Below are positions 23,571 to 28,826 of a stretch of DNA of 42,206 nt, in pieces. Under the pieces are notes generated by a model, which made no database searches, was not told the origin of the DNA, and saw nothing but the letters and a program-made list of their open reading frames with translations. The DNA lies in the NCBI GenBank assembly GCA_025201805.1, contig MU619358.1, positions 1 to 42,206 of the forward strand, written 5' to 3'. The first letter of the stretch is position 1, and the number at the start of each line of letters is the position of its first letter. A program made the position numbers and the translations under genes. This DNA comes from Parasitella parasitica NRRL 2501. Its lineage: Eukaryota > Fungi > Mucoromycota.

Positions 23571-24439
23571 GGGCGATCAATTGTTGTATAACAATGATTT
23601 GTGAGAGCATTGAAGTGACAGATCGATTTGATAGATTGTGCTAACAGTATTGTCATTTTCGTTTGTCGTTACTGCGTGCGTCTGCAGAACAGTGTAATTG
23701 TTGTCTTGAAACTTCAGTACAAAGAAATTCAGTTGCTTATTGCTTGGACCTGACAGATTTTTCATGCAACTGTGGTATCTTTCGAGTCCGTATTTGTAAT
23801 TTGCATTAATGTTGCTTTATCATTGTACCTTGTACGGTTTGTAAGGGAAAAGGACCGTTTTCTACTTGTAATTAGATTTTTGATGTTATACTTAGAGAAC
23901 GAGAAGTGGGCTCTTGTGGAAGCTGTGTATCAGAAGGAGCAGAGTGTTTCTATCTTACTTTCCTAGTTCATTTATTATAGCAATCAATGTCAGTAGGTGT
24001 AACACCGTCAAAATCTCTGTTGTCGTACCTCTGTCTATTTAGGGTCTATTATCGTTCCTTTGGTGCCTTTATTTCTGCTTGATGTCGCTAGCGACTCTTC
24101 GTCCACTCCATCAATATACCTGGCCAGTCCACTGCCCTCTTGTCATTCCTGCTTAACTGCTTCACCCGTATGATGATGATGATTTTGAAGGGGCTTTATA
24201 TAGAAATATACCGATCCATTAGATATGCCAAGAGTGTTTTCGCTTGTGTCTACTTCTAACTTGCGCCGGAAGTACATATCTATCAACTGTAAATCCTTTG
24301 CTACTATTGTAAAGACAAAATCTGGTACAACATATGAAAATAAGAGACTAAGTTTGCACAAGCGATACTCTTTGTAAAAAATACTAGTATACGATATCTA
24401 CTTGTACACTTGCCTCGTCTATTCCAGCTTTGCAGCTAT

Positions 24440-25135
24440 CAACCTGCGCCTTTTTGATTCAATGAATACCAAGGAAGACAGAGAACCGATGATAAAACGG
24501 TAATTATACTTAACAATGGGATAAAAAGTACAAAAAGATGAAAAGAAAGAACATTAAAAAGAACAGAAAGCAGCAAAAGAAAAAGCATAAATTCAGGACA
24601 ATAACAAAAGATAAAGGGTTTGTTCAACTAAAACAGGGCACATGTATTAACAGTGTGATCTAGCGCTTTGGTAAAACTAATAAAACCTGGCAAAGTGGCT
24701 GAACAAGGGTACATTCAAAAATTCAGATGCCATGCCTCTCATTGTTTTTGGTGATGCTATGAAAAATAAAGATACGGTAGCAATCAAGGACCACGCTTCT
24801 GGTGTCACTGGAGTGCTTCAAAGAGTGTCTCAACTGAGGTCGAGAACCTGTGGGTCTTTGGTAGTAGATATCAGAATTGTTACTATATTTCAAATTTGAA
24901 GAAGTTTCTATTCCCAACATTTCGGTGTGCAACGGCTGCAAAAACAAAGAGCTAAAGCCGATAGAACTGCCCAAACAGAAACATTTTCAAGGTATATTAG
25001 TTTGCAAACTCTGCCATATACTTTGGGATCCAGATATAAAATGCCTGAAAAAACATACTTTCGGTTTGGGAGGGAAGACCTTTGGTCTCCAAAAGAGAAA
25101 TCGCGGTGGAGAGGGTTTTGTTCACTTCATCCTAA
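24440..25135 (+). pseudogene. Decayed Fanzor1 relic (RuvC/zinc-finger half)
   Basis: Fragments FNEYQGRQRTDDKTVIILNNG..KKYKK.KRKN.KKNRK, PLIVFGDAMKNKDTVAIKDHASGVTGVL, VCNGC, GILVCKLCHILWDPD and VWEGRPLV across several frames. Confidence 0.75.
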
Positions 25136-25537
25136 AAAAAAAATTCCACTTGTCTCAATCTCAAATTTAAAAATAAATCGTTTTGGACCAAAATTCTGAA
25201 AAAAAGGAAAAGCAGACAGATCCATCATATAATCATTTGCATGGCCTTAAATGATAATATATGCAATCTCTACAAGCTATTTTTCATATTATGCATTCAA
25301 TAGATATAGGGGTAGGAAATCCCTCCTTTGGCAGATTTGAACCTGTCACTACAAGAAACAAACATATTTGTGGGATCGAATGCTAGGTTTCAATTGATAT
25401 ATAATTAGATTATTCTTACACAAAATCCAATAGTTATTGGCGCGCAATTCAATTAAATTTCCACCATGGCTCGCAACAAGTCAGTAATGGCATAATATTG
25501 ACGCGTGTTATATGTGTATAATGGTTTCATACATTAA

Positions 25538-25558
25538 GAGCATCTCCAACGGAGGTGC
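25538..25558 (+). repeat. Terminal inverted repeat (Fanzor 3' end)
   Basis: GAGCATCTCCAACGGAGGTGC preceded by TAA. Confidence 0.9.
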
Positions 25559-25720
25559 TAATTTTAAAAGAAAATTGGTGAGAGGGTGATACTTTCTTTT
25601 TTTTTTGGACAATTTTACTCACCTTTAATGGTGTATAGGATAAACCGAATACCCATGGTGTATCAAAGAGTAATATCAATGACACACAATGCTTGCAATT
25701 ATTCTTTTGATTCAGAACGC
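25538..25720 (-). ncRNA. Candidate Fanzor omega-RNA scaffold
   Basis: Lies between the Fanzor stop codon and the element end, where Fanzor/TnpB guide scaffolds are encoded. Nested stems (UUACUC/GAGUAA, UUUGAU/AUUAAA, AUGGG/CCUAU) use G-U pairs that form only on the minus strand. Boundaries approximate. Confidence 0.5.
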
Positions 25721-26718
25721 TGGAATGGTGAAAGACGAGCGTCGTTGTTTCTTGCTGCATGTAAAAATATGTTAAGGATGTTTTTTGCAGCCACTATATC
25801 GCGATTTCAAATAATATTACAAGCGGTTTCTTGACACTGTAATACAGAACGTACTCTTCGCTTTGCTGATCGTTGCACAACGTTTTCAACATTTCTTTTT
25901 TTGCAGTTGTTGCAGACTTGACTGGTGAGGTATTCGTCTACCATTTGGACTGTAACACCACAATTTTCTTTACATTTTTGAAGAGCTTTTATGATAGTCT
26001 TTTTAGGTCCAGAACTTTTGCCTCTCATGGTAGGTGAAAACCTTCCATCTCCATAGGCAATGATGGTTTTATTTGCCTTCACTGATCCATCAAGTGGTGG
26101 AGGGCGAGAGTAAGAATTGTTGTTTCTCGTTGTTGTCTTCACATTGGTAAACACACCCGTACGATATTTGATGCTATCATGAGTAAACATCTTGACTATT
26201 TCGCTGAAAGCTTTTTGCTTCTTTCTATAACATCTAAACTTTAATTTTGAAGACCTATTCCATTTGGTTAACACATTTTTAAAATATGTATAAGAGTTTG
26301 CTACACTTACCTAAGGCCTCTGTTATAAAATTCATACATTATATCGTATGATTCAATACGCTTTATGCAAGCAATCAAGAATTTTGAAACTTCTCTGGTT
26401 TTTAATGAATCCAGTTCTGTTATCATTCTATGAGTGTTTGTGTGCTTCGCTTGATGAATCTTTCGAATGTGAGCTGCATCATTAAACCCACACAAGTGAT
26501 AATACTCCTTTTGACCTAGTGATCTCACTCTACCAGCTTGGTCAACTATAGTAGGAACCGTGCTAATTCCAGGGTCTACCACCCACACTTGGCACCCATT
26601 GTCAATATCTGTTTTCAGGTCAGATGGCTTTACGGGAAGAGAGTCTTTCTTTTTTTTTTGCTGTAATTATTGAGAAGAGAAAAGAAACTGAATAACCATC
26701 CGTGTAGATAGCATTCCT
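25699..26718 (-). pseudogene. Fanzor1 (TnpB-family RuvC endonuclease), N-terminally truncated, one intron, one premature stop, one frameshift
   Basis: IYTDGYSVSFLF; RuvC-I WVVDPG (D at 26574-26576); EYYHLCG; LKFRCYRKKQKA; IIAYGDG.F; RuvC-II VDEYLTSQVCNNC (E at 25933-25935); VLQCQETAC; *NRDIVAAKNI (RuvC-III D at 25798-25800). GT-AG intron 26255-26310; TGA in place of Trp at 25807-25809. Confidence 0.9.
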
Positions 26719-27148
26719 AATATAATTTGATAAGTTCTAAGGCATTACTAAATTAAAACTATATGAACTTGCTTAAAGATCTTCTTTCCATTGTATAAAG
26801 TTTAACTAACTATACAAACTTTATTAACATTTTCTAAAATGGCCAGCATTTCTGTCCTGAATGCTCATATTAATGTTAGAAGTGTGAGGTTTATAGTATG
26901 AGATATATAAATGTGGGTTGAATAAAAGTAGTGAGCACCAGCTCCTATTTTGAAAGTAGAACGACTTTGCATAAAGAAGAAAAGATAAGAGTAAAATAGT
27001 AAAAGAGAATACAATGGATTCAAGAGCCAAGGGAGTAATTCAAAGAGCTTCAGAGACAAAAAAGCAATGCAACAATAAGCAAGCAGAGACAATTACCAAA
27101 AAAGCAGACAAAACATTTCCGGGTTGAAAAAAAAAGGTGCTTTAAATG

Positions 27149-27169
27149 GCATCTCCGTTGGAGATGCTC
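27149..27169 (-). repeat. Terminal inverted repeat (Fanzor 5' end)
   Basis: GCATCTCCGTTGGAGATGCTC followed by TAA. Confidence 0.9.
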
Positions 27170-27308
27170 TAATTGACTCAAAAAATAGATACGAACCCCG
27201 TTCCGTGGATGATTGCTATATCGCCCTATCAAAGTGCAAATGCTATAAATACTAGAAAACTTTTTCAATGATATATAATCATCTCTTTGTTTACAAACCC
27301 TCATTATC

Positions 27309-28826
27309 ATGACCATTGCTTCGCCATTACCTCTCTCTGATATCGAAATCAAAGCACTGAAAGCCCGTTTTGAAAATGCAGGCCAAGGGCATGTCTTCAA
27401 ATTTTTCAATGACATCTCTCAAGTGGAACAAATTGAATTTTTGAATCAAATCGTCAGCATTGATGTCGATAATTTGAACGCCATCTATGACAAAGCTATT
27501 GAGGGTGCTGCTGCTTCCTCAAATTGCCAGAAAAATGACTTGCAGCCTTTGTCTCAGGATGTGTTTGATTCTGTATTGAAACAAAATGCGTCTACGTTGA
27601 AGGAATGGGAGTTGACCGGTCTCGAGGCAATTGCTCAGGGAAAGGTAGCTGTTATACTAATGGCTGGTGGCCAAGGCACTCGTCTTGGTTCCTCAGCTCC
27701 CAAGGGCTGTTATGACATCAATTTGCCATCCGGCAAGACACTCTTCCAGTTACAAGCTGAGCGTATCTTGAAAGTGCAGCAGTTGGCTCACCAGCATCGT
27801 AGAGAGCAAGACCCTGCTGAAACCATCATCCCTTGGTACATCATGACCTCTGGCCCTACCAATAAGCCCACATTCGATTACTTCAAAGAGAACAGCTTTT
27901 TTGGTCTCAAGCAAGAGAATGTGGTCTTCTTTGAACAAGGAGTTCTTCCCTGTCTGACAATGGATGGTAAAATTATCCTGGAATCCAAGGGCAAGATTGC
28001 AGTTGCTCCTGACGGTAATGGTGGTATATACAAGGCTATCCAAGATAGAGGCGTTATTCAGTCATTAAAGGAACGTGGTATTGAGTACTCTCATTGCTAC
28101 TGTGTTGATAACTGCTTGGCCCGCGTTGCCGATCCTATTTTTATTGGTTACAGTATCTCAAAGGGCACTGACTGTGGTGTTAAGGTAGTTGGTAAGGCTG
28201 CACCAGAAGAACCTGTCGGCGTTGTCTGTGTCCGTAATGGCAAATATGGCGTTGTTGAGTACTCTGAAATCTCTGATGAAACAGCTCATGAACGCCATAT
28301 CGATGGTTCATTAAAGTACGGTGCTGCCAACATTGCCAACCACTTCTTTTCCACTGCATTCCTGGAACGCGTCCCATCTTTCCAAGGTGAACTGGAATAT
28401 CATATCGCCAAGAAGAAGATCAAGTACATTGATCTTGAAACAGGTGAGCAGATTACTCCCAAAGCCAATTCTGGGATGAAACTCGAATGTTTTGTATTCG
28501 ATGTCTTCCCCTATGCCCAAAATATGTCTGTTCTCGAAGTGGATCGCGTTGAAGAATTCTCTCCTTTGAAGAATGCTCCTGGCACTGGTGTCGACTGTCC
28601 TGAGACTTCTCGTCGCGATATCGTCTCTCAACATGTTCGCTTCATTAAAAAAGCCGGTGGCAAGGTTGCTGGTATTAATATGGAAGATTGTGAAAAGCTC
28701 TTGTTTGAGATTTCCCCATCTGTTTCGTATTCTGGTGAAGGTTTAGAACATATCGTCCGCGGAAAAACTGTCAGAGCCCCTGCTACTATAGAATCATTGC
28801 AAGACTTGATTCGTGCTATTTGCTAG
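27309..28826 (+). CDS. UAP1: UDP-N-acetylglucosamine pyrophosphorylase (intronless)
   Basis: LMAGGQGTRLGSSAPKG, IPWYIMTS, FFEQGVLPC, APDGNGGIY, CVDN.L..VADP.F.G, VVEYSEI, KLECFVFDVFP, EFSPLKNA. Confidence 0.97.
   Translation: MTIASPLPLSDIEIKALKARFENAGQGHVFKFFNDISQVEQIEFLNQIVSIDVDNLNAIYDKAIEGAAASSNCQKNDLQPLSQDVFDSVLKQNASTLKEWELTGLEAIAQGKVAVILMAGGQGTRLGSSAPKGCYDINLPSGKTLFQLQAERILKVQQLAHQHRREQDPAETIIPWYIMTSGPTNKPTFDYFKENSFFGLKQENVVFFEQGVLPCLTMDGKIILESKGKIAVAPDGNGGIYKAIQDRGVIQSLKERGIEYSHCYCVDNCLARVADPIFIGYSISKGTDCGVKVVGKAAPEEPVGVVCVRNGKYGVVEYSEISDETAHERHIDGSLKYGAANIANHFFSTAFLERVPSFQGELEYHIAKKKIKYIDLETGEQITPKANSGMKLECFVFDVFPYAQNMSVLEVDRVEEFSPLKNAPGTGVDCPETSRRDIVSQHVRFIKKAGGKVAGINMEDCEKLLFEISPSVSYSGEGLEHIVRGKTVRAPATIESLQDLIRAIC

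Follow-up and report, generated by a model that had tools for sequence, protein, structure and literature searches.

The window, which is the whole stretch of 42,206 nucleotides of Parasitella parasitica NRRL 2501 (contig MU619358.1) that was analysed, contains an element of 1,632 bp at 25538-27169. TAA flanks the element on both sides, at 25535-25537 on the left and at 27170-27172 on the right, and is read as the target-site duplication. The left terminal inverted repeat (25538-25558), which adjoins the 3' end of the Fanzor gene carried by the element, is identical at 20 of 21 positions to the reverse complement of the right repeat (27149-27169), the latter being included in a longer right terminal module (27097-27169). 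Each of the two ends is a small palindrome in its own right, its arms of 8 nt being separated by a 3-nt loop, and palindromic inverted repeats of 21-22 nt are likewise the ends of the family to which the element belongs. In the 32.8-Mb P. parasitica assembly that was searched, a 17-nt end motif with at most two mismatches occurs 65 times, compared with a single occurrence of the reversed control, and the element ends are therefore far beyond chance. The outline given in a preliminary description of this DNA, namely 21-bp terminal inverted repeats and TAA enclosing 1632 bp, is thus confirmed by both the end comparison and the motif counts, and its reading as a non-autonomous terminal-inverted-repeat element with intact ends also holds.

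The insertion lies 137 bp upstream of the start codon of UAP1 (27309-28826), a UDP-N-acetylglucosamine pyrophosphorylase-type gene (Pfam UDPGP, 2.4e-51), the transcripts of which are still abundant in RNA contigs.

The Fanzor gene and the state of this copy

The minus strand of the element encodes the C-terminal half of a TnpB/Fanzor protein, which is the sole gene in the element. The motifs DPG (RuvC-I), VDEY-TS (RuvC-II) and NRD (RuvC-III) follow each other in this order, together with two Cys pairs, and a zinc-ribbon TNB domain is present between RuvC-II and RuvC-III. RuvC-II (VDEY), the zinc ribbon (TNB) and RuvC-III (NRD) are all contained in the last Fanzor exon (25699-26252, minus strand), with the normal stop codon at 25699-25701, and an upstream exon remnant (26309-26736, minus strand) contains part of the WED domain and RuvC-I (DPG). 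The Pfam profile Cas12f1-like_TNB (PF07282; cut-off 26.3) scores 21 bits against the stop-truncated ORF of the window and 41.8 bits when the premature TGA is read through, and it scores 36.9 bits against the sibling copy L031. A single-sequence search reaches the Guillardia Fanzor1 GtFz1 (E 0.0037), an exhaustive HMMER search yielded 459 relatives, and pieces of the family are linked to database relatives at E values down to about 1e-18. A Fanzor profile of 621 positions, made from the family pieces and 13 full-length database relatives, was compared with the solved Fanzor1 structures SpuFz1, GtFz1 and PpFz1, with the gene being searched exon by exon. The match to SpuFz1 (E 2.2e-54) runs nearly end to end, from profile position 7 to 615, that to GtFz1 has an E value of 5.9e-48 and that to PpFz1 (E 7.6e-38) lies mostly in the C-terminal RuvC/TNB part; bacterial TnpB is matched weakly. 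The Fanzor identity proposed in the preliminary description, which had suggested a profile comparison with TnpB/Fanzor, is borne out by the TNB scores, the relatives and all three structure matches. Judged from its sequence, the window gene is a Fanzor1 relic, the membership of which in Fanzor1 is well founded. A second Fanzor fossil, which had been considered at 24730-25170 on the plus strand, was dropped, as it gave no Pfam or profile match.

In the window copy, 1,759 bp of L031, the longest copy, are absent, the start codon and the N-terminal half of the gene among them, and so are another 273 bp close to the right end. What is left covers only profile positions 330-618 of 621, in four frame pieces, with about 330 of the 621 positions missing. 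The last exon is interrupted by a premature TGA at 25807-25809, ahead of the NRD motif, and the upstream exon remnant by a frameshift in an A/T run near 26623-26666, where the window copy differs in length by 1 nt from other copies at 26653. The D-E-D residues noted earlier are thus all present, but the catalytic motifs are split by the TGA and the frameshift and do not stand in one frame. On this reading of the sequence, the window copy is dead and unable to make a nuclease.

The same holds for the other members: among the copies read, no intact one was seen and each is broken, the longest having TTG at the position of a sibling's ATG and no fewer than three breaks of its frame. The expectation that an intact nuclease of this family exists elsewhere in the genome is therefore not met by these copies; other Fanzor lineages with long frames are indicated in the genome. 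Two long open frames over family copies are suspect: one of 554 aa over L027 crosses a run of N, and one of 1,124 aa over L017 probably has the same cause, since L017 holds 1,500 N.

Copies of the family and the nature of the mover

The element has at least 35 relatives in the 32.8-Mb genome. With the whole element as DNA query, about 50 matches of 75-97% identity were obtained on other contigs, and queries with the left end only and the right end only gave 34 and 29 further places, respectively. TAA or TTA stands directly outside 36 of the 39 unique family ends (background 4.3%). The longest copy (L031:1496-5150, contig C70) measures 3,655 bp and is flanked by TTA at either end. The internal deletion of 1,759 bp has its junction at 26793-26795 in the window, and the same junction occurs in L002, L003, L005 and L006, which cross it (window position ~26794) at 95-96% identity. 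Three of these four loci have flanks of their own, and the ends of L003 were not found; including the window copy, the deletion form of about 1.5-1.6 kb is present at at least five loci. Because an identical deletion junction recurs at four other loci with different flanks, the dead form has transposed, which requires a transposase supplied in trans, and no transposase is contained in the family copies in which one was sought, including the longest (3,655 bp). The earlier view of a deletion derivative mobilized in trans is thus supported by the junction common to the four other loci, and its description as young stands only in a relative sense, as the siblings differ by 3-8%.

Paralogous empty sites were absent among 60 loci, every flank being unique. 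In the DNA runs X1 and X2, zero-difference contigs enter both element ends from the flanks, which shows that the insertion is present in those runs. An empty site upstream of UAP1 was not seen in any of the three covering runs (X1, X2 and X7), all of which carry the insertion, and this absence is neutral with regard to the duplication.

In run X8, which bears another species label, a contig of 3,956 nt aligned over window positions 25566-27096. The run contains a 3.3-kb, near full-length copy of the family, with a 1,230-nt piece at 95.7% identity, and this copy includes the segment that is deleted from the window copy; the neighbouring UAP1 gene and flank show less than 90% identity. The combination of a close family copy with a UAP1 gene below 90% suggests, at the level of sequence, horizontal transfer of the transposon, or it may reflect contamination. 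Parasitella is a fusion parasite of other Mucorales.

The superfamily of the mover was approached from the flanks and the ends. At 16 of the 39 unique ends AT is found beyond TWA, and as this occurs on gene-proximal and on gene-distal ends, the target reads AT-TWA-AT. The middle base of TWA agrees on both sides in eight of the 12 complete copies in which both flanks are TWA. L002, L012, L019 and L023 have flanks that differ in the middle base, with TAA on one side and TTA on the other, and two copies have TAC on one side. A simple gap-fill duplication is no explanation for the middle-base mismatches; as a speculative idea, excised elements may carry TWA overhangs from the donor site in a piggyBac-like manner, piggyBac being known to carry TTAA overhangs from its donor site.

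The Harbinger DDE domain (DDE_Tnp_4, PF13359) has seven matches in the genome, the best with 89.7 bits, the longest open frame being 376 aa. The preliminary description had envisaged a partner with a Harbinger DDE transposase sharing the ends of the element; among the end matches listed, none of the seven lies within 5 kb of a family end. It had also called the Harbinger character of such ends established, for which the searched literature gave no match, the end motif itself returning only primers.

A 407-bp MITE on plant-like metagenome contigs (L067:1008-1414, L068:1680-2085 and L069:10422-10827) has its first 12 nt identical to the family end, the same palindromic build and TTA on both flanks, and it adjoins a plant-type RVT_3 ORF; its interior has no match in the P. 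parasitica genome. Tourist/Harbinger MITEs are common in plants, and the 407-bp MITE would be of Harbinger type. The PIF/Harbinger label of the preliminary description is probably correct as far as the sequences go: the TWA flanks, the AT-TWA-AT target and the end of the plant-like MITE speak for it, and the distance of the PF13359 matches and the agreement of the middle base in only eight of 12 copies speak against it.

The superfamily of the ends might instead be one whose transposase is related to Tc1/mariner (DDE_3) and makes a 3-bp duplication, for example a Zator-like one, with an element on contig C89 as the autonomous partner, a reading that we consider unlikely. The element in question (C89:127240-129485) comprises 2,246 bp bounded by family ends, with zero and one mismatch in 17 nt, and contains a DDE_3-type match at 128474-128842 (E 1.6e-17); since it is without the subterminal sequence of the family or the MITEs, it is more than a family copy into which something has inserted, and it could be the true partner. 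Its size, however, is compatible with a MITE carrying a nested mariner of about 1.6 kb, the genome contains more than 130 mariner-like matches, mariner pieces do insert into the family, as at L032, and the DDE_3 frame is interrupted by a stop. In addition, a plant-like contig has ends of this very type flanked by TTA, and Zator is not known from plants. L032 was itself considered as an autonomous partner: at L032:1470-4945 (C2:171469-174920), family ends and the initial ~85 codons (MSYY...) continue in frame into a transposase. This candidate was rejected, as its transposase is a fragment, truncated at the 5' side, from an unrelated mariner family that has ends of its own.

That the element is simply a Fanzor carrier of Tc1/mariner type that duplicates TA, in the manner of MCi-1 and ROr-1 to ROr-3 of Mucorales, appears very improbable, even though most of the described Mucorales Fanzor1 families are of mariner type with TA (PMC3627910), TA lies inside every TWA and the relative L061 ends in CTGT...ACAG. 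TA abuts only 17 of the 39 unique ends, compared with TWA at 36, which argues against a mariner-type TA duplication; the ends of the mariner family read in the genome are unrelated to those of the Fanzor family, and the sole mariner transposase inside a copy is the 5'-truncated chimera at L032. The TnpB of IS200/IS605 cuts empty sites and in this way helps the element to persist, and transcripts of the present family lead from the candidate scaffold across the element end to flanking sequence, so that a spread by Fanzor-guided homing instead of a transposase can be conceived; it is hardly credible here, as homing copies an element into homologous sites and not into new ones, and the deletion form without a working nuclease still reached at least five unrelated loci with TWA flanks. 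Movement by a PIF/Harbinger-type transposase is kept as the preferred reading.

As a separate observation, many Tc1/mariner transposase matches were seen as inverted pairs, 5-9 kb apart, on contigs C74, C29, C128, C25, C30, C46, C66 and C4, and L042 and L043 have in common a stretch of 1,109 bp, 100% identical but oppositely oriented, which spans the 5' part of the transposase gene. Such inverted mariner pairs may be long-armed composite elements with cargo.

A proposed exchange of ends, transcripts and a candidate guide RNA

The right terminal 74 nt (27096-27169) match MITEs of about 600 bp at 76-81%, with nothing else in common, and the long family copies carry a divergent version of this module. 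MITEs of about 600 bp lie at C46:34720-35305, C37:28060-28696, C112:67523-68156 and C116:78822-79446. The nearest relative outside the family, L061, is found on a metagenome contig and encodes a protein that is 56% identical. DNA homology with L061 extends beyond the stop codon and halts exactly at ...TTACAG, which is the position of a splice donor; the L061 element ends at this TTACAG and has its inverted partner about 3.4 kb upstream, so that its ends read CTGTAA...TTACAG, and in the window family GTGAGT stands after the same point. L071 and L062 were too divergent for alignment of the 3' untranslated region, and a remnant of the old (inner left) end was not found on the 5' side of the longest copy. 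These comparisons suggest that the Fanzor module had its origin in an element bounded by CTGTAA...TTACAG and would now lie inside Harbinger-type modules common to small MITEs.

Run X7 behaves as RNA, its contigs skipping four minus-strand GT-AG introns. One of these is a 56-nt coding intron (26253-26308, minus strand), for which the joint 26252->26309 is seen in X7 and which fits the profile matches on either side. Another is a 65-nt GT-AG intron (25558-25622, minus strand) with the joint 25557->25623, read at a depth of 89 in one contig of this one RNA-like run, at 90% identity, which may therefore derive from a sibling copy. The 65-nt intron removes the subterminal segment, so that no more than the final 20 nt of the end remain in the RNA, and both of its splice sites are conserved in nearly all copies. 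Between the normal stop and this intron lies a 3' untranslated stretch (25623-25698, minus strand) that is conserved with L061 and is a candidate for the core of an omega RNA scaffold; the fold of the 3' sequence before splicing and a single compensatory pair relative to L061, the latter judged by eye, are only suggestive.

At the level of the family, RNA contigs show continuing transcription from the right end, and they are abundant over the 5' leader of the family transcript (26796-27096, minus strand), one of them ending in adapter sequence at 27089. A zero-difference contig runs from the left end into the unique flank, which indicates that transcription of the Fanzor strand crosses the left end of the window copy itself. 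A spliced, non-coding-looking transcript was also observed at 24414-25559 on the minus strand, with introns at 24967-25058 and 25349-25419; it is continuous with the left end and could represent transcription running out of the element or, alternatively, a host RNA initiated within it.

A further proposal, which we put forward tentatively and hold to be unlikely, is that the transplanted Fanzor1 module from the CTGTAA...TTACAG element kept a usable guide RNA by the splicing out of the new subterminal segment, the segment past the scaffold reading either the flank or the terminal repeat. If so, splicing would return the conserved scaffold core to within 20 nt of the element end, and if the terminal repeat were read as the guide, the nuclease would be aimed at the ends of elements of the same type. 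Should the spliced RNA be the guide precursor, this would be a eukaryote-specific route to an omega RNA.

Relation to known systems

The window element (25538-27169) is best explained as a dead and non-autonomous copy, with an internal deletion, of a multi-copy P. parasitica DNA transposon family with Fanzor1 as its sole gene, probably moved in trans by a PIF/Harbinger-type transposase. In the RNA contigs, the family transcripts lack the 56-nt coding intron and the 65-nt intron, the latter covering most of the presumably newly acquired 3' end, and enter the flank. Taken as a whole, this explanation seems to us reasonably likely. The window copy by itself is ordinary, as a dead remnant in the promoter region of UAP1 in a species with Fanzors that have already been studied, and the family is a modest variation on known Fanzor1 transposons. 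Fanzor1 is known in several transposon superfamilies, and the window family would offer a concrete case of a change of vehicle in which a guide RNA might stay anchored at the element end, with the old 3' terminus recognizable inside, new ends common to MITEs and an intron bridging both.

The Mucorales Fanzor1 elements described by Bao and Jurka in 2013, MCi-1, ROr-1/2/3 and others (PMC3627910), resemble the window family in that a Fanzor1 of few exons is the sole or main cargo of a 3-5-kb element with terminal inverted repeats, which occurs in several copies, is often degenerate and, being non-autonomous, depends on a transposase acting in trans. They differ in their TA (mariner) or 9-bp (MuDR-like) duplications and in their ends (PMC3627910), and the ends of the window family occur in none of the families in the supplementary table of that study. 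PBl-1 of Phycomyces, with a 3-bp TAN duplication, was considered as a member of the same family and rejected, as its ends are unrelated (PMC3627910). MCi-5 of Mucor circinelloides (PMC3627910) is a Mucorales element in which Fanzor1 is linked to the Harbinger superfamily, but it encodes a transposase, is without recognizable terminal inverted repeats and has a putative 6-bp duplication, whereas the window family shows the reverse, with canonical-looking ends and TWA flanks and no transposase. PpFz1, the characterized and active Fanzor1 of Parasitella parasitica (PMC11423790; PDB 9cf0), comes from the same species and, as the profile match given above indicates, from the same protein family. 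It belongs to another lineage, however, and was not reached by a single-sequence search with the C-terminus of the window family; PpFz1 is active, whereas every copy of the window family that was read is broken.

The likeness to mPing/Pong and to Tourist MITEs lies in the TTA/TAA flanks, the short terminal inverted repeats, the deletion derivatives moved in trans and the AT-rich extended target. Unlike in these systems, the ends of the window family are palindromic hairpins and the cargo is the gene of an RNA-guided nuclease, and, in contrast to mPing/Pong, a partner transposase was not identified among the end matches listed. In comparison with IS200/IS605 TnpB and its omega RNA, the window family has an intron between the conserved stretch and the end, and its guide RNA is a candidate only; in both, conserved non-coding sequence extends from the nuclease gene as far as the element end, and transcripts read into the flank.
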